NCBI GenBank assembly: GCA_024704765.1
Contig: JAKMXF010000111.1
Span: 1,256,619-1,320,618 of the forward strand
Source: Oopsacas minuta
Taxonomy: Eukaryota > Animalia > Porifera
Direction of reading: 5' to 3'
Length of the DNA stretch: 64,000 bases
The notes under the pieces are model-generated. The model did no database searches and was not told the origin of the DNA. It was given only the letters and a program-made list of their open reading frames with translations. How positions within the stretch are numbered: position 1 is the stretch's first letter; the number at the start of each line of letters is the position of its first letter. This document shows, piece after piece, positions 1-41,158 of the stretch. A program made the position numbers and the translations under genes.

Positions 1-56
1 TTCAGAATCCGTTAATTCAGGTTGATATCGCTCAATTTGATAATCCATAGCATAAA

Positions 57-9300: not shown

Positions 9301-12300
9301 AACACACGCACAGTACGCCACAACCACAACCAACCATAAAAGTTGTAGATATTATCACACATAAGATTAACCAATTATCTGGTATTGATGTAATGGAATT
9401 AGGGATCAAACAATCTGAATTAAACAAATTATTACCAAAGCTATCATCAGAAGAATGATCAAAGCATACACAGGTACAATTTGTTAGACAACTACCATTG
9501 TTCTGACATTCTTTAAGACATAAGATTCTCTCACAACTATCACCATAATAAAGACCAGGGCATTCACAGGTACCATTTGAGAGACAATTACCATCATTCT
9601 GACAATCTGGTTGACAAGATAAATTCTGACAACTATCACCATAATAAAGACCAGTGCATTCACAGGTACCATTTGATGTACAATTACCATCATTCTGACA
9701 ATCTGGTTGACAAGATAAATTCTGACAACTATCACCATAATAAAGACCAGGGCACTCACAGGTACCATTTGAGAGACAATTACCACCGTTCTGACATCCT
9801 AATGGACATAATATATCTTCACAAGTATCTCCACTGTACCCACTAGGACAGTAACACATACCAGCGTGACAACTACCGCCATTCTCACAATTATTAATAC
9901 ACTCACATGTTGTATCGTCGACACAGACGCCGGTAGCTGGACATGGGTTCTCATCATCACACATTTGACATGTGACTCTGAGCAATTCGAAGCACTCATC
10001 TACCACTGAATACCTACATTCGGATAAATGTAATTCTGTCCCAATGCAATCAACCTTGACTCCACTTGTCCTTCCACCCTCTTCCCAACTTTCTTCAGCA
10101 CCTGGTCTATCACCACTTAGACAAAATACTGACGATTCATTCAAACTCCAACCCGAAAAACAAACGTCGGAATATGTATCCCCATTCTCACAAATTTGTA
10201 GACGCCCATACCTACTCTTGGTTTCTCCAAAATTACATGAACTCGAAGTTTGCAATACGACAGTACCAGCAATTAACAGAAGAGCAAAAACTAACATATT
10301 AATATAATATAGTTACAATAATTTTCCTTACTCCTTACTTATATATTTTCAGTATTATGATGTAATATTCTTTCAATTCATAGTTCCTAGGCCATACATG
10401 GATGCGTCCCAAAGCACATTTAACCGAGCACATATTAAATACAATATACAAGTAACTCATAATTTGAGAATAACATAAGTAAGCATATGTAAGACGAATT
10501 GAGAATAACATACGAAAACATCTTGTAAGCAAAATGTAATCCACTCTAATAATGCATCCAGTACAAATCTGCAACCAATATACATTTATGGCATAACTAC
10601 CGTGAGATTGCACGGGGAGACACATTTTAATTGTTCATCATTTTAAGGAGCGAATAGTCAGTGCCTACTACACACAGTCAACTCCCGTAATATAGAAACC
10701 CCAAGGGACCGTGATAATTACAGTCAGGGCCGCCTATTATCAACCCACAAGGGACCAAAAATCTTGTTCATAGAATTAATACATATAGAGACTTCATATT
10801 AAGGGAATTTAATTTAATACAAATCCTATGTGAATGATTTCTGGCTTGGTTCATAATAAGAGAATGTTCATAATGAGCACCTTTACTGTACTTCGATATA
10901 AATAGGATTCGATATAGCCGATGAAACTCTTAGGGATTATGTATATATGTATAATTTCTATATATCCGTGTTCGTTAATACGAAAGTTGACTGTGCTATC
11001 ATAAAAGTTAATTAGATACTTAAAGAATCCATAATAACGTAATTCACATAAATATCTTACTTATCAATAATCTTGATTTGTTTGCAAGCTCTTATATAGA
11101 TTAACACTTAGTCTAGGATCGTTCCCAATAATCAAGACAGGATCAGTTTGGGGTACAGGGGGCGGTAACTCTATTTCAATTAGCATACTCAATACTTTAG
11201 AAAAGGTTGGCCTTTCTGATTTTTCACTTCTCCATGTTTCTATCATTGTTTTGTATACATCTCGATTACAGCCTGTAGGTGGAGGTAACTTTGTCCCTAC
11301 TGATAGAGCCCTGACTATTTCCTCATTCGTAGAGTATGGCCATGGTCTCATTCCCAATGACCAGATCTCGTACATTGTCATGCCGAGTGACCACACATCA
11401 CTCTTTTCAGAATACTTTTGATAGAACACAGCTTCTGGAGCGCACCATCTGAACGGGATCTGTCCTCCCTTTGAAGTGTAGTCACCTTCCATACCGAACT
11501 GACGCGTCATTCCAAAGTCTGCAATACGACAAGTTAAGTTTTTAGATACCAAGACATTTCTTGCAGCAAGGTCGCGATGAATAAACTGCATTTCTGCTAG
11601 ATACTTCATACCAGCTGTGATATTGAGACAGAACTGTAGTAAGAGTGAAGGTAACAGCTGACATTTATCAAGTTGGGATTCTTTCAGCTTAAGCAAAAGT
11701 TCCCTCAGCTCAGATTTGAGTAGCTCTGTAATCATCATGTAAGGAGAACTACTAACTACACCAATTAACCTCAATACATTAGGATGTTTGAATTGGTTTA
11801 ATATCATTGCTTCCTTTATAAACGCATTTTCTGCTTCATTATTTGTATAATCTTTTAATTTCTTAACAGCTACGTCAATAGTACCATCAGGTGAACTATA
11901 TTGTGCACTGTAAACGATTCCAAACTGCCCTTGTGCTATTAACTGTCCAATTTTTAATTTGTCTTTATTTACTTCGATATTAGGATCATGACGTAGAGAT
12001 TTGATATACCGTGGAGGCTCAACGTATATCTTCCCAGAAGATGTGAGATGGTGATTCTTACTCACTCCTCGCTTAGAAATAGACGCATAATATTCTGTAT
12101 CAACATAACCGTCAAGGATGGAGGTATAAAAGTCTTCTTCCTTATGACAATCAAGTAGATTCGATTTACTTTTGGTAGTTGTAGGAGATTTTGGTTGGAT
12201 TGGTGATTCATATTTCCTTGAAGAATTTGCGTATGCTGTTAATGATGAATTAGAGGGTGGGACAGGAGGTATGGCCATCTGTGGTATAGGGTCAATAGAG

Positions 12301-15300
12301 TCAAAACTCCCACCAGCGGATTCAATTCTAGGTCTTCTCTCATAGCTTAGATTTTCGCTGGGATATGAATCGAAGCTGTCATCATCCATGAGCGGAAAAG
12401 TTCTATCCGTGTGGTCATTATTCGCTAAGGTGCCATAACGATTACTTGAATGAGAAACACTTCGAATATCACCATGATGTGTATTTTTAAATCTCATACA
12501 TTTGATTAAGACGAGTATTATACTGAATAGAGCGATCACGATAAGGATAACTGATAGGACAGATCCCACTACTATGCCTATTTCGTTATTATTCTGTTGA
12601 GATGTACCATCTACATCTAATTCACATTTAGGTTCTAGACTATTGTGGCATAAATGACAATAATCAGATTCATTAACGTAATTACATGTAGATGTGAAGT
12701 TGCAATATGAAATATATTTATTTCCATCACAATTCGTTAAAACCGGTTTCAGATTATTATTTGAGCTCTCATAACTCTCAACTGATCCAATATGAACCAT
12801 CCCTAGACAGAATTCATTGGTAGAGATATCGCCCAATCCTTCATCATTGAAACATAAAAACTTCCATTCGAGGGTCCTATTATTACTATTCAAACATATT
12901 TGAATAACATTAGATAAGTTTCCTATACTAGTTACTCTTTTGTCTCCGTCTCTACTACAACTTTGAGCGAATGTGTATGATAGATAAAACGTTAATACAG
13001 AAAGAGACAGCAAATAAACAAGTAAAATATTGGAATACATAAAAGCGAGAATCCAATTTCTTCCAGTACGATATTATTGATAAAGCAATATTATCCATGA
13101 TTATGAGAATATCTACCAGAAGAGTGATATATGATATGTACTTCTGAATAGATGTACCTATGACTATCAATTGATGCCTCCAAATGCAGTATAAATGAAA
13201 AAGAATACTTTGGGGCCTCTCTACGTGAGGCGTATTTCGATCATTTTTACTCAAAATATTTCAGTAATAACAAATTCCATAAGCTGGATCCTGACATTAA
13301 ATTGAATAATAAAATTGGACTCGTAACAGAGCAAAATGGATAAATAATAGATTAATAGAATAAAGAATAAATGTGAATCATTTTCAGATGCTGTGAATTT
13401 ATGTTCTATCAAAATTGATTGAGCATTTTATAAATTCAATATTCGGTATCAGGCTTATTCATTAGAAGATTAAAAAGTTAGTAATCAAGAATCCAAAGAA
13501 CACTTGGATATTTGCCTAAAAGTTGGTCTCATTTTTGGATCTTGCCTCCATGTCTCTAACATGATTTGGTACATTTTTTCTGGACAACGGACAGGTTGTG
13601 AGAGGGTGTCTCCGTTTGTAAGAGCTTGTATAACTTCCTCATTATTACAACCTTCCCATGGCTTATCTCCCAGTGACCAGATCTCGTACAGTGTCATACC
13701 AAATGACCACACATCAGATTTCTCAGAGAATTTATTGTAGAACAGAGCTTCTGGAGCTGTCCAACGGAGAGGTACCCTTCCACCACCTGAAGAGGTGTAG
13801 TAATCATTGTCACAATCTATTCCTCGTGACATACCGAAATCTGCCACACGTACACTCAAATCTTTCGCTACTAACACATTCCTAGCAGCTAAATCTCTAT
13901 GAATGAATTTCTTATCAGCTAGATGCTCCATTCCAGCTGCTATCTCCTGACTGAACTTCAGCAGTAGATTTTGAATATTTAGTTTGTCTGAAGAAGCAGT
14001 AGGTCTAATTTGGAGTAAGAGTTGTCTCAGTTCTGTCTTGAGGAGTTCTGTTACCATCATCCATGGTTCTTGAGTTGTCAGTATACCGATAAGTCTGAGT
14101 ACGTAGGGATGATGGAACTGAGTGAGAATAGCAGCCTCCCTCATGAAATCCATTTTGGTATCTTTGTTAGTACCCACAGTTTCCTTCAACGTTTTGATAG
14201 CTACAGGAATGTCTCCCTTCCCTGTACTGTATTTACCTCTGTACACAACACCGAACTGACCAGAAGCGAACTTTTCTCCTATCTCTATATCTTCTGCTCT
14301 AATCTCATGGATATATGCATCTACCATGTGTTTCAATTCAGGGAAGTTCTTAGGAGGCTCCAAATAAGGGCTATCAACTATAGTGCTCTTGTATAAAGAG
14401 TTAACTGATACACCAAAATGAATAGAGTCTATCAGCTGATTTGGATCAATCTTCTGACTTAGTAGGTTAGCATACATACTTGGTTCTATGACCTCCCCAC
14501 CCACTATACTCATATAGTGTTCTATGTTATTATATTCTAGCAGAAAATGAGTTGGATCTTGATATGGCGATGGATCTTGTGAAATGGTGTGATATATATT
14601 TGATGAGTTTCGAAGTGAATTGATAGGAGAATCACAATATATTTCAACCACTTCAGAATAAATTACTTCTTCTCCAGCAACATTGTCACAAGTTGTAACT
14701 GTAGGGTTATTGGTATTTAAATCTCTCCCTTCAAGATTATCAAGAATTAAAGTACGTGGCTCTTGCAAAAGCTTATCTGTGGATTTCTTCCTGCAAGTAA
14801 GACAAATAACTAATATGATGAGGACAGACAAAATAATGGATATACTGATAGCAATAACAAGACTGATGACCAAACCTATGATACTAATGTTATTATCGAC
14901 AGCTGACTCAGAGCAATTTCCTTGATTTAACCCAGATGAAGTACAGTCGATAGTTGGCAAAATAGTTTCTGTCGTAGACAAAATAGATTCTGTCGTAAGC
15001 ATAATAGTTTCTGTCGTAGGCATAGTAGTTTCTGTCGTAGACAAAATAGTTTTTGTCGTAGGCAAAATAGTTTCTATCGTAGGCATAGTGGTTTCTGTCG
15101 TAGGCATAGTGGTTTCTGTCGTAGGCATAGTAGTTTCTGTCGTAGGCATAGTAGTTTCTGTCGTAGGCATAGTAGTTTCTGTCGTAGACAAAATAGTTTC
15201 TGTCGTAGGCATAGTAGACTCAACATTAGTTTGGTTAGAAGTTGGTATTTGTGTAGATATGGTCGTACTAATTGTTGTTAATGGTTGAGTTAATTGTTGG

Positions 15301-18300
15301 GTGTCGTGAGAAGTAGTACCTACAGTAATATCATGAATACTACAATCAACTCCACTAATTCCAGTAGGACAGATACACTCGCCTAGAAAACAGAACCCTC
15401 CATTCATACAAGCCTCCTCACACACACATCTTCCTTCCTCACAAATTCCAGCATTACAATCGGTTTCTGCGTTACTGCATCGTCTGCAACTAAATTCAAC
15501 AGCAGACACATAATGACAATCCTCCATTGTTGTACTATGACTACAATCCAATAGAGACATACTGTCACTACTGCAGTCTAGATTTATTAATTTAACCATA
15601 CCATCGCTTATAATATTAGAGGCACCTAACCCTGAGTAATCTGACAAGATGTAACCAGCTCTTCTACAATACACATATGCCTCACTACTACTCCAACCTT
15701 CAAAACACACAAAGGTCCAACTTTTAACTCCATTATTCTCAAAACAAATCTGTATTACATCGTTTCTATTTGCAGCAGATACCACCCTCTCATCTCCCTC
15801 TACGTCACAAGAATCGGAGAATACAACTCCTGAGGTTAGAAGCAGAAGCTGGACTACTCGTAAAATCCTCTGGTAAAAGTACATAGAATATTAATATGTT
15901 AAATAAATTTGTAGTCCTAATATATTAGGTAATTCAATCAGGCTAGCGCTAGGCAATGAGATAAACCATGGCCTGGGTATACCATTTCAAGGCTAGGTAT
16001 AATGATGTACTATTAATACAAGAATTGAGAATCCGTTTGGGAGAGTTCTACCGAATTATACAGAAATTAATTAAACAGACAGATTTCTAATACATTTTAG
16101 TATTTAAATGTTTTATCAGTAAAGCCTTGATTTCCCGAACAGCAGGGAACGTACGGGAATTTGGCGAAATAGAATCTGAGATTTGAGCTTCTGACTTCTA
16201 TACTAACTATAGTACTAATCCTTTCGAAAGTTATGGTGATGTTAGACACATATTAGTATAAATAAATCTTCCAAGTTGCAACATTCTTGTCAAATATTCC
16301 AACTTCCGAGTTACAAAATCCTCATTTTCTATAATCCTCAAGCATTGAATGTCAAATATCAAAATACAGTAAGACACTATTCAGTTATTCGAATACGTTA
16401 ACACCAAAGTTGAAATTTAGAGACGAAAGGTGTTCGGATAGCCGAGGGTGTACCGTATCCAGCAACCTAATTGGTTACGACATTTATGGAGTTGTTGGTT
16501 AGAAAAATTAATCATTAATACAACTGAAAATTTGATTGCATAATTGTCCGTGTTGATTCTACCATATTAAATAGCATTCCATGAAAATATCTCTAAAATG
16601 CAAACGGCTAAGTATATTAATTACAGAAATTTCACTGAATAATATTACGTATAAGTAACAATTCTAAGAATATAATTAATATAATGCTACATACGCGGAA
16701 TTTATAATTTCGTATTCGTTTGTTGGGTCATGGATTCATTATTAGATTTGACTGAAGGGAAATATACAACAACGGAATCAGAAAACGTGTACTCTAATCA
16801 TTTCTTAAACAAAATAATTATTAGATTATATATGTTTCCGTAAGTTTTTTCTTTAGTTTTCTTGTAATAATTGCGTAGAACATTGCTGGGTTATATGTAA
16901 GACTGTTGTTCAAAATATGATAAATAGAACAAATTTCTGTTTTTGTTATGATAATTATCTGAACACAGTTAAGAACATAGTTATAACAAATGAAACTTGC
17001 ACTAGTTGTATCTCTCTTAATTATATTTGCATTATGGCAGTGCAGAAGTCAAGAGTGTAGCATGGTGAATGAAATAGAAGATTTACAATGTAATGAATTG
17101 AGAGAAGTTAGGTCAGATGCTATATCATCATCATCGAATTGTCGGTCATTCATTACATATCGAAATAGTAGTGAGAATTGTCAAGATATCCCACACGAAG
17201 ACGAAGATTATCTAGATGGGATAATAGTAATCAAATGCACTCGTAATGATGGTATAATCTGTTTGAAAAGTGAAATGAAATTTAGGTGTACATCGTGTGA
17301 AGATGACGCGAATGGTCGAGGTTTTTGTAATTGTAATTGTATGGCTGAGTGTGAGGTAAGTGATGAAAAAGAGACATGGGACATAATATCTACAGTAAAT
17401 ATAACCCAACAAGTTATCTCAAGAATAAGCACTAATCAACCAACAAGCCCAACTATAAATGAAATAACAGATGCACCAACAGCGAATAATACCACAATAA
17501 GGAACAACAGTAGCCCAACTCCTGATCTCCCATTAAATACAAAGCAATACTTAGCTTACGTATTACCAATAGGTGGAATATTTATCATATTACTGATAGC
17601 AGTGCTAATCCCTATCATTGTGTGTTTGATATGTAGAAGGGTATTAAGTAAAGGTAAAGATCCAGAATTAGATACACACTCGATGGATATAAGCCAGTTA
17701 TACATAAATCCTCATATCAGCTCTACGAATGAATCTAACTATTCCACGATATCAGAAATAGAACCCAATAATACCTGTAATTCTCTCAGAAACCACTCCA
17801 ACCAAGATACAAGTAATGGTATAACATCGAATAGACTATCTGAAAATATGTATCAAGAGATCAGATCTAGCCTCATATCAGAAGCAACAACTCCCGGGGA
17901 AATGATACAAAATGTATTATACAATTTCGGTGCTACCAATGAGACAGATATCTCAAATAACTTTTATCATGTCTTGGTAGCTGGTGAAGTAATTCAACCA
18001 AACATTTATGATCAAATAATAGAGGTTAATTCTTTATACTCGAAAGATAATACAAGCAATGAGCAGCGAGATTTTCATAACTACATCGAGCCCCCTAAGA
18101 ACTTCCCTGAATTGAAACACATGGTAGATGCATATATCCATGAGATTAAGGCAGAGGATATAGAGATAGGAGAAGAGTTCGCTTCTGGTCAGTTCGGTGT
18201 TGTGTACAGAGGTAAATACAGTACAGGGAAGGGAGACATTCCTGTAGCTATCAAAACGTTGAAGGAAACTGTGGGTACTAACAAAGATACCAAAATGGAT

Positions 18301-21300
18301 TTCATGAGGGAGGCTGCTATTCTCACTCAGTTCCATCATCCCTACGTACTCAGACTTATCGGTATACTGACAACTCAAGAACCATGGATGATGGTAACAG
18401 AACTCCTCAAGACAGAACTGAGACAACTCTTACTCCAAATTAGACCTACTGCTTCTTCAGACAAACTAAATATTCAAAATCTACTGCTGAAGTTCAGTCA
18501 GGAGATAGCAGCTGGAATGGAGCATCTAGCTGATAAGAAATTCATTCATAGAGATTTAGCTGCTAGGAATGTGTTAGTAGCGAAAGATTTGAGTGTACGT
18601 GTGGCAGATTTCGGTATGTCACGAGGAATAGATTGTGACAATGATTACTACACCTCTTCAGGTGGTGGAAGGGTACCTCTCCGTTGGACAGCTCCAGAAG
18701 CTCTGTTCTACAATAAATTCTCTGAGAAATCTGATGTGTGGTCATTTGGTATGACACTGTACGAGATCTGGTCACTGGGAGATAAGCCATGGGAAGGTTG
18801 TAATAATGAGGAAGTTATACAAGCTCTTACAAACGGAGACACCCTCTCACAACCTGTCCAATGTCCTGATCAAATATATCAAATTATGCTTGAGACCTGG
18901 AAGCAAGATAAAGATTATCGCCCAAGTTTCTCCCAACTGAACAGAGAGCTGAATTTACCTATATGATTTCAGTCATCAAGCTACTTCTCAATATTATTAA
19001 ACACTTGATTGTGTAAATCAAGATTTCTGGAATAACATTTGTTATGATATTCAAGTTGATTGTAAATTATGTCAATACTCAAAACTTAATCTTGCAGCCT
19101 TTGTACTCAATTTCAAGTAATAACACCTTGAAACACATTCGCTCTCTCATTTTTAACGCCCTAGGTTTGAATTTTTGAAAAATGGCTATAAACTTATAAT
19201 TCATTTAAACCATGGATGCCTAGTTAAGCTATATGTATATCTAACATGGTTAATATACAATATTTTGTAAACTAATAATATCATAATTATATTATTAGGA
19301 ATTTAGGACCTTGGTCATTAGTTGCATGGGAAACGGACGCTAGAGTTAGGTAAACCTCATGCTATACACATTCCATTCCATCGATGAATTTATTTTCCTA
19401 TACAGCCAGGGGCGTAGGGCCCCAAACAAATGTAAGGGTTCACAACTTCAGACCAGACGAGTTTTTAATTAAATTCCTCTGACTTTACTAATTATCACTA
19501 AGAAATAAGAATATATACTAAAGTTTCCAAAATATCCAAAGTAGTCAGAGAATATATTGATGACCCTTAATTTAGGGTAGGGACAGATATTTCACTTAAA
19601 CATGCGTTTTGGGGTGATTTTATTTTATATTGAGAGTGAGATCGCGAGTGAAGAGAGCCGAAATTTTACCGTTTGAAATTCGATCCAAATATTATGTATT
19701 TAGATTCCAATTTTGATATTTTCAAATCTATATCTCATATATTTACCATATTTACAACCAGGGTAGGATATATGTCCGAGATGCCTGAGCTGCACTCCCA
19801 GTCTGCCAGCTGGATATTTTCTATCTGTCTTTGTAGCAATTATTATTATTATTATTATTATTTGCAGAATGTACAAAATAGAAATGATAATTATAATATC
19901 GCAGATAATCAGTATTTTGTAATTTGTACACATAAACATGAATAATAAAGATACCATCTTCATTTGATTATAAGTTCTTAGATAAGCTTACGTGCTACAA
20001 CATTTTAAGAAAGATTTTTTGTCTACAAAGTATTTTTTGCGATAATTAGCCAGTAAACTAAGTTATCAAAATGATGATATGCAATACTATAATTTACTTA
20101 AAATTGTGTCGGAATTTCATCTCGTATATTCATCGAATTTTCATTAGTTTGAAAACTTTGAAAATATTAAAATATATAATCGCAGCGTAAAATTTGCAAT
20201 TATATTAGTTGATGCAATTCCATAGAGTATTGCACAACAGCGTATGTTCTTTCTAATTGTAATCAAATGTATTTTCAACATGTAACTTGAGTAATAATTA
20301 TTACTATCTGTCAGACAGTGAGGAGACTGTTTGGCACCAGGGGTTACGTCTCTGGAGAGAGACAATTAGATTCAATTTCACTGAGGCAACATCATGAATC
20401 ATGTCGATGAGTATTCGATTGCCACTGAAATCGAATATTTATTAAAATATGTCTAGGATTATTGGAAAATTATAATATTCTAACAAAAATCTGTAAATAT
20501 TTACGTCTAGAACAAATAGTTAATTCCTTTAAATAAATTATTTCTGATAAATATGGTCTCATAATCATAGTAACTTAAGTATGCGAAACCAAAGTAGAAA
20601 GTTTCAAGAAATAGACTATCAGATTAAGATTATATAAGGGAATATTCATGCATTTCGAAGTGACAATGTGTCCCATCTTTTTCGACACATTATACAATAC
20701 TTGATTAATTCACTAATTCATGAAATTTTCTTGTAAATCATAATTCAGATGAACATTTCTTGGTAAAAATTTGATTACAATATTAACAGTATGAAGTTCT
20801 ACAATATTTCTGAGAAAATATGCCAAGAGTTTATTAAATGATTAGATAATACACATATGTGTATATATATATAATAATAAGCTTTCTCAGAAAACAGTAA
20901 GTCTGGTTATAGTTGTTGATCTATAAAGCCATTTCAACTTAGTCAAGCTCTGTAATACCACAAATTATGCTAAATATTCGCATAATAATTATTAGACTGA
21001 ATGGAATCATGGCCACATAATAATCTGTGTGGTATAACAACATAGTGGGAAGATCAACGAATTCTAATTTCATAGAGATGAAATTCAATGAGTGTACAAA
21101 TAATTGTGTTTTTATCAAGAATTGTGTCTCTGAGTCTGCCCTATAAATGCAGTAGGATTGTCAATAATATGATTTTTCAAACAATTAAACAGCACATACA
21201 TTGAGATGCATATACTCAATATTCTAAGTGTAATCCTATTAGGGATAACCTTTTTGGGATTGGGACGATGCGAATTATGTGACAAAGTTGGAGAGATCAG

Positions 21301-24300
21301 GTCAGAAAATCTTGAAATTATGGATTCATTATCCCAAAGTTACGCACAGATATGTCTACAGCAATCGAGTAGTTTGGAATGGAGTCACATTTGTTCTGAA
21401 CAAACAAGTGAAGGATTTGCTTGGCCCTCTGACAACGGATATGTTTGGTGTAGATCTATGAAGAGAATACCACAGAGTGATCACATAGGATCAATAACGG
21501 CCTCTACATATGGTGTGGGTGATATTAAGTTAGCCAGTGCAAGCTGTGACAGGATAGATCATGAAGATTTGTATGCTTGTAATCACACTACAACTACTGA
21601 GGGTTGTAGATATCTGCATGGGCTTGTTTGTGTCTCTTGTTCAGAGGCTGTACCCTGTAATGGTAATGGATCATGCAGCGAGGGAATGTGTGAATGTAAT
21701 AATAACTGTATGAATGGTGGATTCTGTGATTTAGGAATATGCCAGTGCAGATATCCATACTACGGTGAAAATTGTGAGTACAAATATTGTGTTTCATCTT
21801 GTAATGATAATGAGTTCTGCTTGAATAGCTCTGGGACGTGTATTTGTAAGGATTCATATTATGGTGACAGTTGTCAGTATAAAATATGCCCCGATACATG
21901 TGGTGAAAAAGGAGAATGCAATAATCAAACCGGTTTGTGTCAATGTGAACCAAATTATTTCGGTATCACATGTCAATCAAAGAATTGTACACCTTCTTGT
22001 TCACAGAACGGAACATGTGATGAAACAGTGGGATTATGTCAATGTAATGCACCGTATTACGGAAACAGTTGCCAGTACTTAGGAATAAATTGCACTAACA
22101 AATGTCTAAACCGAGGAATTTGTAATTTCACAAATGCTATGTGTGAATGTAGTGCAAACTTCAGAGGAAACAGCTGTGAAATTGCGTTATCACGTTTTGA
22201 AGAGAATATAGTGATTTCCATAGGAATATTAGCATGTACAGTAGTAATACTGATTGGCTTGGTAGTACTAGTAGTCATAATGTGTATAGTGATTAAAAGG
22301 AGAAAGAGAGGTTCTAAACAAAATGGGAAAATTAAAAATATCGAGTTGTCTGAAGATCAGATACAGGCTTCACAAGAAAACATAACCGAGTCTAAAACTA
22401 ATATAAAGCCAAAACGCAAGTTAAAGGATAACAAAACCTACATCAAGAGCTTAAACTCTAGTAAAGGAACTGAAGCACAGATGATAAGTCTCAATCAGAA
22501 CGGGAATAATTTTCATGCTTCTACAACGAGTAGTCCGTATACACAACTAGGAACACTTGAATATATCAGTTATGAAAGGGAGGAAGTGCATGCCATGTTT
22601 TTAAATGGAGATCGGACAGGGGAAGAGTTGTACGAGGCATACACTAGGATTAACGATAGCATTTTGCCAAGTAGAAACGCTACAATTGTCCTGTCTCAGG
22701 AAGAACGTGATTCGATTCATTCTCAAAATAACGAGCCAATCTATGAAACCTGTCTCAGGAGGGGGAAAGATACAAATGTTGTAAAATTCTCTGATTCAAC
22801 TGAATACTGCGAACCTCCGGATAACTTACCAAAGATATTCGATAGAATGTCTTTAATGAAATTTCGTGAAATCAACCCTGATACTCTTGAGAAACTAGAC
22901 TACCTGGGTTCTGGAGAATTCGGTATAGTTTATAAAGGCATTTGGGATACAGGACGAGAGAAAATCGATGTTGCAATGAAAATATTGAAATCATCAGATG
23001 AAGGAGTGAAGACAGCGTTCATGAGGGAGGCAGCTATAATGGGACAATTCTCCCATCCAAACATCCTAAAACTTATGGGCGTACTTAGTTTGTCAGAACC
23101 CTTCATGATAGTTACAGAATACATGAATGGAGATCTACCAAAGTTACTAATAAATCTAAAACCATCTGGAATAAATTTTTCCCTGATACCGCCAGTCCTA
23201 TTAAAGTTCTGTAATGAGATTGTTACGGGCATGGAGTACCTTGCTTCTAAGAATTGTGTACATCGAGATCTAGCTGCTAGAAATGTTCTCCTCAGTCGTA
23301 ACATGGTGTGTAAAATCGCAGATTTTGGAATGTCACGTGAATTCAAAGAGAACTACGATTATTATAAATGTTCTGGAGGTCTTATTCCTGTGAAGTGGAC
23401 CGCCCCAGAATCAATATTCTACCAGAGATACTCTGAGAAGAGCGATGTTTGGGCTTTTGGCATGACTATGTTTGAGATATGGTCACTAGGTTATAAGCCT
23501 TGGCATAATAAGTCTAATGAAGATATTCTTCAAAAGATGCAGTCTCGTCAAGTAATGCATCCACCAACAGGTTGCCCAAAGGAAATATATGCTATCATGC
23601 TGGAGACCTGGAAGTACGAAGTGGATGAGAGAATTACATTCAAACTATTGCGGCAGTTACTTCGGAAACCAATCCAATTCCAAACTAATACTTCATCTCA
23701 CCCAGCTGATGTTCTTGGAAACGATCCTTCTCTCGTACGAGGATTCGATTGAAGCATAATATTGATAATATTTTTATAATTTGTTTTCTTATCATTTAGA
23801 ATGTTTTACTTCTTTATGTATATGTCAGCTGTTTTGGTATTTTTACACACATTAGCAAGGATCTTATCATAGAATTCTGAATAATTATTCATTTTGAAAC
23901 ACCCGCTTTGCCACTTTTACGACCCAAACGTGGGGCTTCCAGGCGGTCCAAAGAGCCAGAGAAAATTTTACGACGCCCATGTATTGGTGTGTAAATTAAA
24001 AGATTCTAAATAGCCTCAGAAACTTGGTTTCAACCAAATATTAAAAGTACTCAGAGCATGCTCCATCTGCACTGAGAATATGCACCACCTTGGCAATTGA
24101 ATAAAGCTATTAAATATTTGGCTTGGATGTTTTCTAGGCATTTTTGGACAATTCTCACTTGTTGGAATAGTATTTTCCCTGTGTTATTGGCTACCTGCTT
24201 AGATGTTTATTTTTGGACATTATGAGACACTCCTCGTTTTGTTGGAGTGGGTATTTCCCTTGTATTAGTGGTCAGGTGCTTGGATGTTGTTTAGGGCATT

Positions 24301-27300
24301 TGGGGCGGGTGATACTCTAAGTACAAATAGAGCATGCTATGAGTACTTTTACCACCTCTTTCAACGGTTATACTGGGGTGTTCGAGTACGCTGATTCCGA
24401 ATTTTGCACTTTGAAACAGGGGTAGCGCCAGGAAATCCCCGACAAGGGGGCTTAGATCCCCAATGGGGGGGTCTAAATTTGTGACATAAATCCTAGAATA
24501 CTACACAGTTTTACTAGATATAATTCATATTCTTGTCAAATTTCTTCCAATTCCTTCCCAACGGGGGAGCTGTAGCCCCCTCACCTCCCCCTAGCGCCAC
24601 CCCTGCTTTGAAATTACTCATATGTAAATAATTGTTGTGTCTATAAACTAATTTCGAGGTACGAAGTGCCGAGTTCCATGGATCACAGAGTATTCGCAAG
24701 CCGCGCGCTCGTATATTTTATGGTCAGAAATCAAATTCATTGCACCTGTTGTATTGCAAATGCTAGAAACCGAATTTAGAGTAAAAATACTACCAAATAG
24801 ATCCCGGAATTTAATTTTAACCAAATAATATTAATCTAAAGCTAAATATTAAGATAATATCTCTAATATGAAAGCATATACTTTACCATAATTATTAAGA
24901 TACCTAGAGGTGTGCGGAAATTAAATACAATTAAATTCTAAGCAATTAAGCTGAATTCAATTATCTAAGTTCTAACAATCTTGACACTATATGCCAACGT
25001 AGTATTAATTTAATAAAATACAATTTCATTCTCATGGCAATCAATCATATGGTAATTATGTGATTAATCAGCCACAATTTGTAATTAGTTATAGCGTGGT
25101 GGTGTAATTAATTGGAGTTGAGAAAAGCATTAATAGTCTAAGATAAAAAGTAAAAATGATTGGAAAATTGAAAACTTGAAGTACGCTTGATAATGTCAAA
25201 GATAAAGTCAATCATATTTGTGTTACTGATCTGTCTCATGACTCAGGTTATTACTGTATTAACTTGTACAAATAGCAGCCAGTGTAATGGATCAGCTGTG
25301 TGTGGAAGCGGTGGAGTGTGTGTTTGTGAATTTCCTAATTTCGGTGCAGATTGTGAGTTGAGGAACTGCTCCCCTCCCTGTAATATTAACCAGACTTGTA
25401 ATAATCAAACTGGAATATGTCAGTGTAAAGTTCCATTCTATGGAAATAACTGCGAATTGAGAGGATCAGTTTGTCCAGCTCAATGCTTGAATGGAGGTTC
25501 ATGTAACTTTGCTGATGGTACTTGTCTATGTGCTAATAGTTACCATGGAGATGTATGTGAGTTACGAGTATGTATTCCAGCCTGTAAGAATGGAGGTGTG
25601 TGCATATCCCCTAATCACTGTAAATGTGTTAACGGTACGTATGGAGTGTTATGTGAAGAGTTTTTAGACGATTTAAATATAACAGATTTTCCATTAATTT
25701 TTGGTGTTTCAATTGGATTGATAGTATTTTGCTGGTGCTGGGTTATTTACGTAATCATAATATTAACCACTGAGGCCTTCTGTATCTGTAGAAGAAGGAT
25801 AAACAAGAAATCAACTCCACAACCACATCTTTCCCTAAGAACGCAATCTTCCATTAGAATACCGATGCATTTACCAACAGTTAATTTAGAAGCAGGAACA
25901 TTCGATATACAAAACTTAGGAATGACAGATATAGAAAGGAGGAGGAGTCATCTGGTTAGAAATCAATACTACAACAGCAATGAGAGTATAGAATACAGAG
26001 GATGTAATACCGAGACAGTAGCGTACATAGATCCAGATTTACTTTCTGTATCTCCAAACAGAAACTACAACGTCCCAAATAATGACCAACTAGCTGCATC
26101 AGAAGGGCATTGTATTACAAACCATCATATCAGAGAAGCTAGCTTGAATGCAGGATTATATCATGATAACAGTGACGTATATATTCTCCCAGATAATAAG
26201 AATACTGGACCTGCTCTACCACCGAAGCCAAGACCAAAAGCTAAATTTGAAGAGACTCGAAAGAGATTAAGAAAACAAAGATCAAATAGCTATGCAAACG
26301 ATGATTATATCATTTATGAAACTATTGGAGAAGAAGATAGAACGATGGATACAATGTATTCACTGCTAAGCAAGCCAAACAAAAGCGAGCGTAGATGCGT
26401 TGTACTCTCAAATGAAGAAAGAAATTCTCTTCCCAGAGGGAAAACTAGTTATAGCACATTCCCTGGCTTGCTAAAGCAGAGAAGGCAGACTAGATACTTC
26501 AAAGAAGCTCCAATCTATGACAAACCTTCCACAACTCTGGATAAACTGTTTGATCAGATGTCAGGCATGAATTTCAGGGAAATAGTGCCAGACACATTGA
26601 TCACGAGTGAGCTATTGGGGACAGGAGAGTTTGGGATAGTTTGTAAGGGTGCGTGGATTTCTAGACTGGGAGAGGTACCTGTAGCTGTGAAAACTCTGAG
26701 AGAGCCTAGTACTGAAGAAAGGAAGATCGCTCTGTTCCAAGAGGCACTTATCATGGGACAGTTCTCCCATCCAAATGTAATCAGGATTCTAGGTATAGTT
26801 AGCATTAGGGAGCCTTACGCAATCGTATCAGAATTGATGAAGACTGAAATGCTAGTATTTCTACGTACAGTGAGAAATTCAAAGATTGATTTGAACAAAC
26901 TGCCTCCTCTCTTGCTTAGGTTTTGTCGTGAAATAGCAGCAGGAATGCAATACCTCGCTTCAAAGCGTTTCGTGCATCGTGATCTAGCAGCGAGAAATAT
27001 TTTAATCGCGAACAACTACACTATTCGCATAGCAGACTTTGGGATGGCTCGTGAAATTATAAATAACAGCGAATACTACTCTACTTCAGGGGGTAACATA
27101 CCGGTTAGATGGACAGCACCTGAAGCTTTGTTCAATCAACTGTATTCTGAAAAATCTGACGTGTGGTCATTCGGTATGACAATGTTTGAGATATGGTCTC
27201 TAGGTCTCAATCCATGGTACAATTTATCTAATGACGAGGTTATACGAGCTATCCATGGACACCGAGTTCACCCTCCACCCACAGGTTGTCCTAGAGACGT

Positions 27301-30300
27301 ATACTTCATTATGGTAGAAGCTCTGAGATATGAAGTGAAGAAGAGATGTGTATTTACTCAATTCAGACAAATGCTGGAGGCACCGATTGTACTACTAAAA
27401 CCAACAACTGGCACAAATGCAGATGTGCTCGGTAACGACCCTAACTTGGCTAAAGACCTCTACTCTGATTTACAGACAAAGTACATGTATTGAATTAGTA
27501 TGTCGGTTTATAAATGTGAGCATATAGTGATAAAGAGCTATACATATGTATCTACTGGTTGTGTCCCATATTTTGTTTGTAATTTTCAAATTAACATACT
27601 TCATAAGCAATTAAAGAATATCTAATTAAAGATTAACACATCGTAGAGATTTATAATACGCATCAAAATATGGTGTATGTACCATTTACAATATACTGTA
27701 TTAACATACTTTATTTATATCTGTATTTATGAAAATATATAACCTAAGACAGACAAATATCGAGAAATTAATTTTTCATTAGCTAAGAACTAAGAGAACG
27801 CCAATTCTAACTGATGTACAAATACAATTAACAATTTTAATCCGCCAAATTTCGCATTATTTAAGTAAATGAGATGGTTTACACATTTTTCAGTTTATTT
27901 AATCTAAACAATTTGTACAATAAATAATGATACAATTAATTGATGTTACAACACATTCTACATCGCTAATTGCATTATGTAATGTGGATTTATTTCGTTT
28001 TGTATCTCTTTTGCAAATCTAAGTACAAATATTTTGATAGTGAAGGTTCATTACCTACTAGATTCATTGGATCTGTTTCAATCCCTTTTGACAACTTGAT
28101 ATCATTTAACTTCACACATAAATCGGAGAAAGTAGGTCTATTTTCAGGCTCTGGGTTCCAAATCTCTATCATAAGCTCGTAAATATTCCTAGAACACCCA
28201 GTAGGTGGAGTAGGTAGATTATGGTGAAGGAGTGTATCCACCACCTCTTCGGTAGTTAGTGTACACCAAGGTTTAAGACTCATACCCCATACCTCGTACA
28301 TAGTCATGCCAAACGACCAGACATCTGATTTCTCACTAAACCGCCGATAGAAAATAGACTCCGGAGCTGTCCATCTCACTGGAATATGAACTCCTGAAGA
28401 TCTATGATACTCCTTTTCAGTCTTAAGTTCACAGCACATACCAAAATCTGCTATACGACAGCTAAGGTTGATTGTCAGGAGAACATTTCGAGAGGCTAGG
28501 TCTCTATGGATGAACTTTAGATTACTCAAGTACTCCATCCCAAGGCAAATTTCAATGCAGAATTTATGAAGTAAGGTAGGGAATTTTGATTTCTCAATCG
28601 GAGATTTGTTTAACTTAAAAAGGAAGGAGTCTAATTGATCCTTGTGTAACTCAGTGACTATCAAATAAGGTTTCCCTAGGGTAACGACCCCGAATAGCTT
28701 AAGAATGTTTGGGTGGTAGAACTGTCCCATAACTGCAGCTTCTCTCAACACACCAACCACTTCATCAGTATTTTCGGAATTGTTTAGTGCCCTGATCGCT
28801 ACAGGAATATCTCCGTAGTTACTGGCCCAATTTCCTTTGAAAGTATCAAAAAACTGTGCTTCAGAAAGCTTTTCCTGTGGACTCAGAGTTTTCCTGTTTA
28901 TCTCGCGAAAATTAGATTTTGACATCTCATTATATATCGTGGAAATGTCCTTTGAAGGAATTTTCAATCCAGCTTGTTGCTTGAAAAAGTTAGTCTTGTC
29001 TAAATTTGAATCAGGAACTTTCTCAAAGACAACTTCATAATCATTTCCTACATTATTCCTTTCAGTAGAATTGAGTACAATAACTGCAGTTTTATAGTCA
29101 TCCTTCACAGTATGGTTCTCTGTAATTTGTTGGTACATTGATTCACTAACTTTGTTGAGATTCCGCCCTAGCTCGTATGCTCTGTAAATGTCAGATACTT
29201 CATCATAAATAGTACTATCATCATGTAAATCCTCATCTCTATCAGAATAATCATTGGCCATTATCAGCTCCATTGTGCTGGTAGGGCTCACAACATTAGG
29301 TTCGCTGTACGGAGGAGCTGCTTTCTTAAAACGTTGCTGTGGGGATTCGTGCATAGTTTGGTTTTTCAAATTAGAGCCTGTACTCTGGGAACGACCATCA
29401 AGCTTAAAAGACTCATAAATAATTGAAGAGTCGTTCAAAGGTCTGTCACCAGAAGAAGTAATAGTAGACATGGGCATCTGATTGGTACTACCGTGTGTAT
29501 CGCTCAAAACCGAATTTTCATAGACATTACGGTTCATTTGTGAGGTAGCTAAGACAACAGGCACATTATCCAGGCTATACTTCTTACGAGTAGCACAACA
29601 GGCGGAAAGACAAATACATATCATACAAGGACAAAGTAGACAGCAACATAATAGGGCGAATACCCCGAACAACGGTATTACAAGCAAATACAAACTGATT
29701 GCATTATTACTGAAAAAACATTGGAGGATAATACAAGCTATACTACTCGAGTCACAGATAAGAGTGTACAGAGAGGTGGAGTTTGTGAATGTTAGAGTAT
29801 CATTCTGATAAGCACAGTCTGTAAGGAGAGCATTAGATTCGTTCCCCACATAGACAAGGAATATGATATACAAGTAGATAAATACAGACATTATTAAATT
29901 CTATCGATTAATATGAATTATGATATTCGAATATAATTGTATAAATATAGTATTCAGTGAGATAATGTGACTATAGAAATGTGCCCAATGAGGATCAAAT
30001 ATCATAAACTGTCTTTATTAAGAACAACTAATTCTAAAGAATAACTTGCAAAAGTTCTATAATATCCTATGAATAATCAAAATTAGCAACTATTGACAGT
30101 TAAATCAATTAATATATTATTTTAATGAGAATACTACAAATATCAAAATCTAACAAAATCATTTCACAAAAAATAAAATGATACAAATACATAATTAACT
30201 AATTGTCAACTTGTGATAATTATACGTTATTAATATCTTCAACACTATTTCTATCATCATGTTGTTGTATCACATATTTAGGCTCCATATTAGTGTAACC

Positions 30301-36300: not shown

Positions 36301-39300
36301 TATAGCATAAATGAAGGGAGGGGGTTTATTGAAACCCTAAAATATTATAACAATCAACAACTAGTGCAATTTTAATACGATAGAAAACTATAAATGTATA
36401 ATCGTACACAGTTGGTGATGGATTCCAGTAGAAATATTACTACAAATAATATCATTCATCAACACTTAAGACTCATCATATTCAACCACGGATTGGTTTT
36501 CGTAAGCATTCTCCTTCCAATCACTGTCCTGTTTTTTAAGTAACAAATTAGGAGATGAAGCTTCCATTAAAATAGGAAGATTTCGTATAGCAGGTTCTTC
36601 ATGATTTGATGCATTGACGATTTGATTTTCATAATTAGTTGTGGAGTCAAATCCTTCCCGATTTAAACTTGTTTTGGCTTCAAGCACAGAGTCTTCAACC
36701 TCATAATGAGAAGTCTTCTTTTCTGAGGGTTCATCTATGCTATTACTGTTTGGCATAGGTGGCCTGCTATCCATTTCTACATAAAAGGATTCATCCCGTG
36801 CAGGAGGTAGGGCAGGTGGCATCCCATGATCCATCATACGCCTTTCGTCAACGACTGTATAAATAGTTGATGTTCTTTCTAAGAAGTCCGGCATCTGTAA
36901 ATCAAGTTTTTCCGGTTTGACATTTTTATGCCACTTATTTTTCATCATAAAACATACCATAATACACAGGCACAAGCATAAAAACGATACCAATAATATG
37001 AAACCAAACAACACGCCAAATACGACAATGCCTAACAAGATAGGATCCGAGAAAATAGATGAAGTTCCAGTAACAGGAGATTCTGTTGTATTATTGATAA
37101 ACGTTGTAGTAGGAATGCAAATATTGTCTACTATTTGCCCAGCACAACAGGAAAATACGCCATCATTCAAATTAACAAGGCATCGACTGCTAGATGGACA
37201 AGGTGGAGAACATGTCATAAGAATTTCACAATATTCACCAGTGTAAGGAAACTGACATTCACAAATACCATTGTCTTGACAATTACCAGAGTTTTGGCAA
37301 GGTGAAGAACATGTCATAAGAGTTTCGCAATATTCACCAGTGTAAGGAAACTGACATTCACAAATGCCATTGTCTTGACAATTACCAGAGTTTTGGCAAG
37401 GAGGAGAGCATATCCTATCCTCACAGTCATCTCCTGCATACCCATGAAAGCAGACACACCCTCCTACGTAACACACCCCATTCTCACACTGTTTGCAGCT
37501 ACAAGTACCGTCAACATTACATATAGAGTCATCGTCACCTAAACAATCTGTATATGAAGTGCATGATTCACAAGTTAGTCCACTAACGTAATGACATAAA
37601 CCAGTCATTACATAACCGCCACACTCGGAAATGTTTGTAGGACTTGGATTTCCCAAACAAGCAAAGTTTGTATATTTAGGGGTTCCAATATCGCCTACGT
37701 ATACAGGCATTATCATTGCGTCATCATTGATGTAGCCACTTAAATAACAGAAATTCTCGCTGTTACCACCAGATGGTGCCCAGTTCCCGTTATAACACAT
37801 GGACATGAAATAGAGGCCAGCGTCAAAAAAACTAATCGAAATATTAGAGGCGTTGAAGTAAGCACATATTTGAGGGAATGATCTGTTAGAATCGTCGAAA
37901 TATATTCTAGTGTCACCTGAAATCTGACAAGGTTCTACGGGAGGACCTTCGATTCCATCCACAGGACAAAAGACCGCACAAAACAGGATTATAGAGGAAT
38001 AAATGAAAATTCTCATTTTGGATAAATTATTGTTCTTGGAGGTTTAGTAAATGTATATACTGAGGAGTTAAAGGCATATTGCTACCTGATGACCAATACT
38101 ATCCCAGCAACTTACTAGGTTACATGTTGCAAAGTACAAATTAATGCAAAAGTATGTCAAATCATTATTGTAACTCGAATAAAGTACTCCTATAATGTTT
38201 GTAATGTAAAGTGCTATTATTAGATGCAACATAGGGTGTAATAGGCGTGACGAGAGGTTAGAGAAGGACATTAATAAAGATATCTTCTACCTAGCAAAAT
38301 CAGAGATGAAAGAAAAACGATACTACAATAATTACATACTCGGATATTAATAATCATTTGTATTATACATATCTTAATGCAAGAATTCCATCTACACTCT
38401 GCTCCATTAAGATCAAACCAAATCATTTCTTAGGTAATCATCAAGTATTATTTATTAATTTTCTGTGTAAAGAGTGTACCCTTTAAAAAGTGAAATAACA
38501 CAATTGGATATGAGATGGAGAATATTTAACTGTGTATCAACAATAAATACACACTCTGGCTCTGGTCAAACATCAGGGCCGGTGCCACCGTGGGTGTCCT
38601 GGGTGTCCAGACACCTACTGCCACGAAAGACCTTTGCATTATCCTCTATGGTAGATGCTGTTTAGACACCCAAAAGCTTCAATAGGCGGCGCCGGCCCTA
38701 AATATCATAAATCTCCCGAAAAATACTAGCACATAGTAGTGAATCGGTCTGAAGATCCGAAGATGAGATATTCGTGAAAATGTCCCGATAATACTCGTAT
38801 ACTCTAACCAGAGTAGACTGAATTATATAATTACACAATTAAAATAGATAATCTTAACCATAAGCTGCCATAACTAATGTATAACTACGAGTAATATTAT
38901 GCTGCAAATGTCTACACACTACCATTATTCGAATTAACTAAATAGAAAAGGAAATTTATTTTTGAATAATTGTATATGATAGATATCATCACATAATATT
39001 CAGAGTAATATTAAGAAGAAAATTACAAATGAGATAAAAATAAAATTATCTCCAACTACCCACAAGGAAATATCCTAAAGTTATTGAACTTTGTGGGTTA
39101 ATATGGCTCGTACCACTCACAGTTTGTTATAGCGATTATAAAAGTGTGAAATCGAGTAGAATAATAAACAAACTGTACTAATGAATATATTATTCTATTA
39201 TCTGGTGATCTTATTATTAACTTATAACATACATGTTATAGTAGAGACGCGTAGTCTAACGGGAAACTACACTAGAGAACGATTAGTAACAGATGAAACA

Positions 39301-41158
39301 GGCTCGCGTTGTGTGAATGAATATCGCTACGAAAGTGATAATAATGTATCTTGGTTGAGGATATGTGCAGATGAAATGAGTGAGCATACTGTAAGCCTTT
39401 TGTGTAGAAATCTTCTGGATCTTAGTACAAACTCAATAGAGATAAATGATTCTGAATCTCCAAAGAATCGAAATGAAAAAGTGCGCATAGATTGTGATGG
39501 AGATGAAACCAGATTAGAAGAGTGTAATGTTGAAATAGTCAATTCCTGTAAAACAATCCTGCATGACAAAGTATGTGTTAACTGTAGCCAAAACTCCCAG
39601 TGTAATGGATCAGCTGTGTGTGGAAGCGGTGGAGTGTGTGTTTGTGAATTTCCTAATTTCGGTGCAGATTGTGAGTTGAGGAACTGCTCCCCTCCCTGTA
39701 ATATTAACCAGACTTGTAATAATCAAACTGGAATATGTCAGTGTAAAGTTCCATTCTATGGAAATAACTGCGAATTGAGAGGATCAGTTTGTCCAGCTCA
39801 ATGCTTGAATGGAGGTTCATGTAACTTTGCTGATGGTACTTGTCTATGTGCTAATAGTTACCATGGAGATGTATGTGAGTTACGAGTATGTATTCCAGCC
39901 TGTAAGAATGGAGGTGTGTGCATATCCCCTAATCACTGTAAATGTGTTAACGGTACGTATGGAGTGTTATGTGAAGAGGTGGACTCAGATATATTTCGTC
40001 ATGGATTAACGGTTGGTGTCTCACTTGCTGTTATAGTTTTTTTCATTTTAGTTATCATATGCATGATAATTTTGCTATGTATACAACTCAAAAAGCTAAT
40101 GAAGTATAAATTGGATGGAATCTCTATTCGCAAGAAGAAAATACAAAAAGAATTGAAAAGAGAAGTTCAAATGGAAGATTACGTAAATATTCCCAAAGAA
40201 ATACATAGGCAACAAGCACATCTTACACAAATACAAGCTGTCATACCGAATCTGAACCGAAACAGATTATCAGAAGTATACTACGCTATTCCGCAACAGC
40301 TAAGAAATACGGAATACAGAGAAGAGGGTTACTCTACTATGCGGTTACACTACGATAACGTAATCGCTGCAGAATCATGCCAGGATATAGAAAGCGGACA
40401 GCAAGAGCAGAGAACAGAAACTCCAGAATATATTGAGCTGCAATAGATATTCTGTCACATAGAGTGAGTAGATTAGTTTAGTTTAAGAAAGTTTAGGTTG
40501 ATACAAGATTTTCTATGTTCTAATTAAAATATTAATACAGTCTACATCTGGTAACTAGAATGCCCGTTAACTCGAACGAATATTCAGTTCACTTCGTTGT
40601 ACTTTTAGTACTTATCGCATCCGTTAACTCGAACATTCGATTTTTCCAACAGATTTTCAGGAATCGAATTACTGAATGTGAACTATATAGTATATTAATT
40701 AAATCTCCATTTGTGTCTGTGTGTCTGTGTGTCTGTCACGCTCCCATATAGAGAACATATAGGTTCAGTTCATAAAATCCAGAACTAAATACTACACAAC
40801 ATAACAACAACAAAACAACATTGTACTGGGGTAATCGAGTATACTGATTCCGAATATAATATCGTAAACAACATTTCCTAAATATTAGTTCACTTTTGGA
40901 GACATAAAGAAAGCAGATTTAAAGTTTATGGCAGTATCATGTTTGCTACGGTTAAGATGAGACCAGGGGGGGGGTCGACAAAGTGCGGCCCCTCATAGCA
41001 AGTTTGGGCAGCGCGGGCAAGCTTCAGATACTCACATAAACTAGCTATCTTCGCTGTAATAACTAATTCCATAACCTTATTTGCCACCCGAATCTTCTTG
41101 TTTAAGTACTTTTGTATATTTAACATAGCCTTATTTAAAATTTCAATTATTTCTTTAC

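Follow-up and report, generated by a model that had tools for sequence, protein, structure and literature searches.

A predicted receptor pseudokinase with a very short ectodomain in a receptor tyrosine kinase cluster of the sponge Oopsacas minuta

Pseudokinases are defined by sequence (Manning, Eyers, Murphy) as proteins with a kinase fold in which one or more among the β3 Lys, the HRD Asp and the DFG Asp is missing (PMC4718504). Most of what is known of receptor pseudokinases concerns eight human proteins. Each of these keeps at least two of the glycines of the Gly-rich loop (PMC13259870, Table 2), and human receptor pseudokinases signal through heterodimerisation and trans-phosphorylation (PMC13259870). 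The model of a docking platform that is phosphorylated in trans and acts as an allosteric activator is HER3 (ErbB3) (PMC4718504, PMC13259870). An active member of the same family phosphorylates the juxtamembrane Tyr of EphB6 in trans, and EphB6 recruits SH2 proteins; STYK1 (NOK) has no plausible ligand-binding module and is suspected of working with a co-receptor (PMC13259870). The gene described here, R8, lies in a 64,000-nucleotide stretch of the genome of the glass sponge Oopsacas minuta (GenBank assembly GCA_024704765.1, contig JAKMXF010000111.1, positions 1,256,619 to 1,320,618 of the forward strand; hereafter the window). None of the eight human proteins has the combination of features found in R8 (PMC13259870, Table 2), and a literature search found nothing specific on sponge receptor pseudokinases or on the R8 family.

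By the standard sequence definition R8 is a receptor pseudokinase, because its β3 Lys is replaced by Arg367. The kinase fold itself is present. The Pfam profile PK_Tyr_Ser-Thr (PF07714) matches R8 residues 339-594 over profile positions 4-257 of 258 (E = 2.6e-68). The AlphaFold2 (AF2) model of residues 317-633 has a predicted local distance difference test score (pLDDT) of 87.4 and a predicted template modelling score (pTM) of 0.88, with low scores in the activation loop only. Foldseek places this model nearest to Eph kinase domains (TM 0.8-0.9, 34-37% identity) and the sequence search agrees. The similarity is confined to the kinase domain; the ephrin-binding, FN3 and SAM domains are absent from R8 according to Pfam, so R8 does not qualify as a member of the Eph family.

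Catalysis by canonical kinases requires Lys72, nucleotide binding depends chiefly on Gly52 among the Gly-loop residues, and the best predictor of kinase activity is an intact Gly-loop together with the VAIK motif (PMC4718504). R8 has neither, and therefore most likely carries out no efficient phosphorylation; it is predicted to be catalytically dead. The αC Glu384, HRD Asp464, Asn469 and DFG Asp482 are all intact. In the activation loop R8 deviates from its active paralogues at three positions (R487C, the Arg following DFG, Y496H and G501V), while Tyr495 is kept.

The preliminary description of this locus had reported the replacement of GxGxFG by SEAQFFD and of the β3 Lys by Arg, with HRD, DFG, the rest of the fold and a 633-codon frame intact, and both the translation and the Pfam match bear this out. 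Its estimate of about 45 extracellular residues agrees with the ~41-45 derived from hydropathy, and its reading of R8 as a receptor-type pseudokinase with a very short ectodomain is supported by the sequence definition and by the loss of the β3 Lys and of three glycines. However, it over-read the EYH of the activation loop as a defect. Human EGFR has EKEYH at the aligned position where R8 also reads EKEYH, and Tyr495 is invariant.

The R8 frame contains no internal stops. In Pfam searches the kinase domain is its only domain, with no EGF or SRCR match; its N-terminal 340 residues match no Pfam domain even at E <= 10, where only noise was returned. The signal-peptide and membrane boundaries were drawn from Kyte-Doolittle hydropathy only. 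After the N-terminus the sole long hydrophobic segment spans residues 62-102 (19-residue windows >=1.6, merged), and the ~41-45 residues between it and the N-terminal hydrophobic segment form the ectodomain. R8 therefore lacks the ligand-binding ectodomain of receptor tyrosine kinases (RTKs). Otherwise its layout is that of an RTK, with a hydrophobic N-terminus, one membrane segment and the tyrosine-kinase type motifs HRDLAxRN and PVRWTAPE (hydropathy, translation). All R8 orthologues (described below) have an equivalent hydrophobic N-terminus with an invariant Glu18, and Cys26, Cys46, Cys53, Cys58 and Asn37 of the ectodomain are invariant in the alignment of all eight. The sequons are N17, N30 and N37, the latter two inside the ectodomain proper.

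Hidden ectodomain exons were considered and rejected, since stops occur in all three frames upstream of the ATG. They are also disfavoured by the conservation of the R8 N-terminus in all orthologues. Additional coding sequence 5' of R8 was rejected as well, as this spacer differs from the orthologous loci by indels of lengths not divisible by three.

Of the 20 residues ~82-101 (29589-29650, minus strand), which close the membrane segment on its cytosolic side, twelve are Cys (CCCLLCPCMICICLSACCA). This cluster may be a multi-palmitoylation site. Cys84 is invariant among the orthologues, and Cys-rich membrane borders of a similar kind are found in R9 and other receptors of the cluster.

In a word-based protein search R8 matched seven full-length proteins (624-644 residues, 46-61% identity over 97-100% of the query), beyond which matches fall sharply to the kinase domain only. 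Several of the nearest matches that carry a species name, the best one among them, are from O. minuta. Each of the seven loci (L001-L007) comes from a different European Nucleotide Archive (ENA) assembly. In the window the gene order is R9, R8, R7, R6. At all seven loci a kinase-less gene of ~280-360 residues lies directly upstream of the R8 homologue on the same strand, and six of the seven also carry a convergent EGF-repeat RTK homologous to R7, plus an R6 homologue. The exception is L002, which holds only R8-type and R9-type copies and no full-length R7. Because of this shared gene order, the seven relatives are considered orthologues. Provisionally, and within the reach of a word-based search, the family appears to be confined to these sponges.

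Within L002, positions 1-12579 contain four R8-type copies, of which two are intact and near identical (synonymous divergence, dS, 0.01), one is C-terminally truncated (552 residues) and one N-terminally truncated (418 residues). Two R9-type copies are paired with R8-type copies. These copies reflect either recent amplification of the R9-R8 pair at this locus or haplotypes assembled together. The spacer between R8 and R7 contains a fragment of a hAT-transposase dimerisation domain in L006 (12478-12822) and an actin gene in L007 (12721-13851); this convergent spacer tolerates insertions.

In the kinase phylogeny the R8 family is monophyletic (support 100/100) and sister to R6+R7 (90/88), which points to a common ancestor of R8 and the adjacent EGF-repeat RTKs R6 and R7. 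The R8-family stem (0.51) is only a little longer than those of R6 and R7 (0.42 and 0.36), and its internal branches are ~1.5-2x longer than theirs. Inside the family L007 is the outgroup to L004-L006 and to a group of the window with L001-L003; the placement of L006 relative to the other two groups is unsettled. L007 has the Gly-loop G-H-G-N-F-A and β3 VAVK, and with all catalytic residues present it is predicted to be active. L004-L006 read S-H-S/T-Q-F-A with VAIK, having lost Gly1 and Gly2. The window and L001-L003 (the Arg clade) read S-E/Q-A/T-x-F-F/Y with VAIR, having lost all three Gly and the Lys. The loss was thus stepwise: Gly1 and Gly2 went first, and later Gly3 was replaced by Phe or Tyr together with the change of Lys to Arg. 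The short ectodomain is found in all eight orthologues and therefore predates the loss of the ATP-binding residues.

For a comparison of constraint, 16 predicted-active relatives were used (R1, R3, R4, six R6 and seven R7 orthologues). Sixty-one kinase-domain columns are invariant in these, and 19 of the 61 deviate somewhere in the R8 family. Five of the deviating columns belong to the ATP site (G52, G55, V57, K72 and L173 in protein kinase A numbering) and five to the activation loop. At the L173 position, the adenine floor (R8 position 471), the eight orthologues have L, Y, Y, Y, S, N, F and L in turn. Invariant in all eight are Glu384, His-Arg-Asp464, Asn469, Asp-Phe-Gly482-484, Tyr495 and APE. 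A WNK-type compensating Lys was also considered and rejected: Lys352 is family-wide, and the Arg and Lys clades are separated by only eight fixed changes, none of which adds a Lys to the ATP site.

Two side observations concern other kinases of this expansion. R3, R4, R5 and many database relatives read A-S-G-Q-F-G, with the first Gly replaced by Ala and the other catalytic residues intact; active kinases in this expansion probably carry it as a normal variant. The relative P0069 (446 residues, another assembly) has β3 VAVM and ANFE in place of DFG; it is either a pseudogene or another, unrelated kinase-dead copy.

R8 is under purifying selection and is a functional gene, not a pseudogene. Its silent divergence is 0.3-0.4 among three orthologues, 0.5-0.7 among three others, and saturated (>2) between those two groups and the window. 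For the same pair of assemblies in the Lys-to-Arg clade, pairwise kinase-domain dN/dS (the ratio of nonsynonymous to synonymous divergence) is 0.063-0.069 in R8, 0.049 in R7 and 0.046 in R6. Maximum-likelihood estimates of this ratio (omega; GY+F3X4) over all taxa are 0.103, 0.078 and 0.075, respectively. Counts of nonsynonymous against synonymous changes give p ~1e-23 to 1e-27, with a Fisher p of ~1e-23 inside the Lys-to-Arg clade. The pre-kinase part of R8 evolves faster than the kinase domain (omega 0.28, 0.26-0.30), but no faster than that of R6 (0.27). No relaxation of selection was seen after the change of Lys to Arg, omega being 0.088 in the Arg clade and 0.119 in the Lys clade.

The codon for Arg367 differs across the Arg clade (AGG in the window, then AGA, AGA and CGA), while the Lys clade has AAA or AAG. 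The Arg itself has therefore been maintained through synonymous change. Among the 120 best database relatives a β3 Arg is found only in R8 and its three closest orthologues, and judging by these sequences it is not a chance feature. Neutral evolution, a possibility raised in the preliminary description, is rejected by the seven full-length syntenic orthologues, by the variation of the Arg codons and by a kinase-domain omega of 0.09-0.10, similar to that of the active neighbours.

Conservation extends to the upstream non-coding sequence. The 19-nucleotide motif GATATTTGATCCTCATTGG, which contains an inverted CCAAT, occurs once in the window and is also present in full in the three nearest relatives, L002 among them. 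Its core GATATnTGATnC is conserved in each of the six other assemblies aligned (L001, L003-L007), ~95-130 bp upstream of the ATG, although silent sites are saturated. The motif is probably a promoter element, which suggests that R8 has its own promoter. An AATAAA directly before GATATTTGATCCTCATTGG probably ends R9, and polyA-like signals are present downstream of R8.

The best explanation of these observations, and a fairly probable one, is that R8 works as a non-catalytic receptor subunit without efficient phosphorylation. An active receptor kinase, with R6 or R7 as the obvious candidates, would recruit R8 beside itself and phosphorylate it in trans on the conserved juxtamembrane tyrosines and on Tyr495. 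Phosphorylated R8 would then be a docking platform, perhaps also partnering the active kinase domain allosterically, in the manner of HER3 and EphB6. Its input would come via a co-receptor and not from a ligand of its own, since an ectodomain of only ~45 residues cannot plausibly bind a ligand alone.

A docking role is suggested because the invariant islands of the fast-evolving juxtamembrane region centre on Tyr (Y159-E-S, Y229-x-E, I-Y236-x-A-x-E-x-G and Y285). Four of the 12 juxtamembrane Tyr are invariant, against 28 of the 214 other residues (13%; Fisher p = 0.07). The same role is indicated by the invariance of Tyr495 and of Tyr623 and Tyr630 in the tail, where G613, N614, P616, L618, L626 and Q627 are invariant too, and by the juxtamembrane layout and tail motif that R8 has in common with R6 and R7. 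In the preliminary description R8 is inferred to be a partner, allosteric, scaffolding or dominant-negative, that is dedicated to the six active kinases. Such a partnership may be proposed because the R8 kinase is sister to those of R6+R7, and R8, R6, R7 and R9 are conserved neighbours.

Several points weigh against the favoured explanation. All eight orthologues, the Arg clade included, keep Asp464, Asn469, Asp482 and Glu384 unchanged, even at silent-site saturation. It is not obvious that a pure scaffold would need such invariance, and one or another of these residues is missing in most human receptor pseudokinases (PMC13259870, Table 2). R8 itself retains Leu471 at the L173 position and the gatekeeper Thr, which may leave its adenine pocket open. 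There are also precedents: the sequence-defined pseudokinases KSR2, HER3, CASK and ULK4 bind ATP or show weak activity (PMC4718504; ULK4 preprint). Finally, synteny is weak evidence of a physical interaction.

Most of these points, together with the confident predicted fold and the absence of a rise in omega after the change of Lys to Arg (0.088 vs 0.119), favour a distinctly less likely alternative, namely that R8 is an atypical kinase which is still active or binds ATP. Arg367 would pair with Glu384 and the nucleotide would be held in a non-canonical way, with the catalytic loop and DFG allowing slow phosphotransfer or a nucleotide-dependent conformational switch. However, all three Gly-loop glycines are lost, with Phe at Gly3, and Lys72 is absolutely required in canonical kinases (PMC4718504). 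No WNK-type Lys compensates for its loss, given that Lys352 is family-wide. The adenine-floor position 471 varies freely between orthologues, and R8 has Cys in place of Arg487, which is invariant in active relatives.

A decoy or dominant-negative subunit is improbable. Such a protein would pair with the active kinases of the cluster through its membrane or kinase-like domain and damp them without any docking. The kinase-dead signature, the tiny ectodomain and the conservation of R8 beside its closest active kin would all suit it, but the invariant juxtamembrane Tyr motifs, Tyr495 and tail Tyr623/Tyr630 would be superfluous in a pure damper. It is very hard to believe that R8 is an incipient pseudogene with a frame merely not broken so far, as the lost catalytic motifs and tiny ectodomain might indicate, and this reading was rejected on the selection data and the full-length syntenic orthologues: these are intact in seven other assemblies at saturated silent divergence (dS of 0.3 to >2 excludes that the assemblies represent one individual or genome), omega is 0.09-0.10 (p ~1e-23), and the upstream element and the ectodomain cysteines are conserved.

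Table 1. Features of R8 and its neighbours. Positions are those of the window, or of the locus where one is named.
Feature	Position	Strand	Basis
R8 coding sequence, 633 codons + stop, intronless	27990..29891	-	open reading frame (ORF) list; continuous Pfam kinase match; colinear with 7 full-length orthologues
R8 hydrophobic N-terminus, residues ~1-20, MSVFIYLYIIFLVYVGNESN; probable cleaved signal peptide	29832..29891	-	sequence; hydropathy
R8 short ectodomain, residues ~21-61	29709..29831	-	translation
R8 membrane segment and Cys-rich cytosolic border, residues 62-101	29589..29708	-	Kyte-Doolittle
R8 juxtamembrane region, ~230 residues, Tyr-rich, residues 102-328	28908..29588	-	alignment of orthologues
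R8 tyrosine-kinase-like (pseudokinase) domain, residues 329-596	28104..28907	-	PF07714, AF2, Foldseek
Degenerate Gly-rich loop LSEAQFFDT; G-x-G-x-F-G replaced by S-E-A-Q-F-F	28842..28868	-	translation
β3 Arg367 (AGG) replacing catalytic Lys (VAIR)	28791..28793	-	translation
HRDLASRN, DFG, EKEYHRSSGV activation loop, APE	28359..28508	-	translation
R8 C-terminal tail with motif GNEPxL..LY..LQ..Y, + stop codon	27990..28103	-	alignment
Non-coding motif GATATTTGATCCTCATTGG, inverted CCAAT, 94-112 bp upstream of R8 ATG	29985..30003	-	alignment of orthologous loci
R7, predicted active EGF-repeat RTK, convergent with R8	25193..27493	+	Pfam, translation, tree
R6, predicted active EGF-repeat RTK, next neighbour	21206..23752	+	translation, tree, synteny
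R9, kinase-less single-EGF membrane protein, 330 residues	30220..31212	-	Pfam EGF_2, E = 2e-4, just under gathering score
R9 orthologue, L001	8715-9707		
R9 orthologue, L003	2896-3855		
R9 orthologue, L004	7933-8886		
R9 orthologue, L005	8304-9377		
R9 orthologue, L006	7773-8618		
R9 orthologue, L007	8537-9544		

R8 sits in a region of low GC content (~35%) packed with intronless receptor genes. Seven genes of this cluster have a tyrosine-kinase domain; about seven encode EGF or SRCR membrane proteins without a kinase. The β3 Lys, HRD and DFG are kept in all six other kinase ORFs of the window. The R8 kinase is nested in the clade of the cluster RTKs (R1, R3-R7) and shares juxtamembrane and tail motifs with them, but according to Pfam it lacks the SRCR and/or EGF-repeat ectodomain typical of these receptors. 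Outside the kinase domain there are two cluster-wide motifs, the juxtamembrane VVLSxxER[ND] and the C-terminal GN[DE]PxL..LY..LQ..Y; both are present in R3 (11064-13040), R6, R7 and R8. The AF2 model places the C-terminal motif beside the kinase domain with good confidence.

R4 (13485-15884, minus strand) and R5 (16990-18966, plus strand) have an identical kinase region in inverted orientation, with branch lengths near zero. A stretch of four EGF repeats in R7 (25279-25660) is identical to ~39600-39980 of the kinase-less gene at 39181-40446.

A counterpart of R9 lies directly upstream of the R8 homologue in all eight assemblies, the window included. The overall omega of R9 is 0.27. The segment made up of its outer juxtamembrane part and membrane span hardly varies (PTGxLGLxIGYPLYLxLxIPS...CHLCxxCCIP), and its tail carries the conserved motifs RPLPPxPP, YSYP and SGYTxMEPKYV. 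R9 is a possible partner of R8. A bolder version, which is doubtful, would make the two genes a split receptor inherited and duplicated as a unit, with R9 taking the extracellular input, R8 acting as the docking or allosteric module, and the signal passing via R6/R7. It is suggested by the conservation of R9 beside R8 in the eight assemblies and by its duplication with the R8 orthologue in L002.

R8, a receptor pseudokinase by sequence, arose independently in a very early-branching animal lineage, and non-catalytic receptor subunits would already be part of sponge tyrosine-kinase signalling. The pattern of loss is unusual: the residues of the N-lobe that hold ATP are gone, while the catalytic residues of the C-lobe are kept, under selection. 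The orthologue series provides a natural stepwise record, from a predicted-active receptor kinase through an intermediate with Lys to a form with Arg and no Gly-loop glycines. These natural variants offer a way to ask why a kinase fold persists once normal ATP binding stops. Such an event is to be expected in a large, fast-evolving expansion of receptor kinases, and the surprise is moderate.

Of the known systems, human STYK1 is closest to R8 in architecture. Both are single-pass proteins with a diminished ectodomain (22 residues in STYK1) and a degenerate tyrosine-kinase domain (PMC13259870), and a ligand-binding module is as implausible in the tiny ectodomain of R8 as in that of STYK1. However, STYK1 keeps the β3 Lys (VILK) and two Gly-loop glycines, reads HKD, and has lost the αC Glu and the DFG Asp (GLG), which is the opposite of the R8 pattern (PMC13259870, Table 2). 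The two proteins show no specific sequence relationship, the nearest solved kinases of R8 being Eph, and their origins are independent.

The kinase fold of R8 is nearest to that of the Eph kinases, and in EphB6 and EphA10 the β3 Lys is likewise replaced (VAIQ and VAVH, respectively). Unlike R8, these two keep GxGxxG, have lost HRD and DFG, and possess the full Eph ectodomain and SAM domain. HER3 resembles R8 as a kinase-impaired receptor under selection beside active paralogues. It differs in keeping the Gly-loop and the Lys, in binding ATP tightly, in having lost the HRD Asp and the αC Glu, and in its large ligand-binding ectodomain.

Like R8, mammalian KSR1 has a natural β3 Lys-to-Arg change and retains most of the remaining catalytic core; it scaffolds a related active kinase and is its allosteric partner. 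It is, however, a cytosolic RAF relative of the Ser/Thr type and not a receptor, and its Gly-loop is intact. VRK3 shares with R8 the replacement of Gly-loop glycines in a conserved fold, and in VRK3 the side chains preclude nucleotide binding (PMC4718504, PMC2639636). Its whole catalytic site is poorly conserved ('inverted' conservation), whereas the C-lobe catalytic residues of R8 are invariant.

By analogy, then, R8 is closest to STYK1 in architecture and to Eph in fold, and its presumed mode of action is that of HER3 and EphB6. It stands outside all these families and belongs to the sponge cluster's own RTK clade, as a new, independently evolved addition to the known class of receptor tyrosine pseudokinases.

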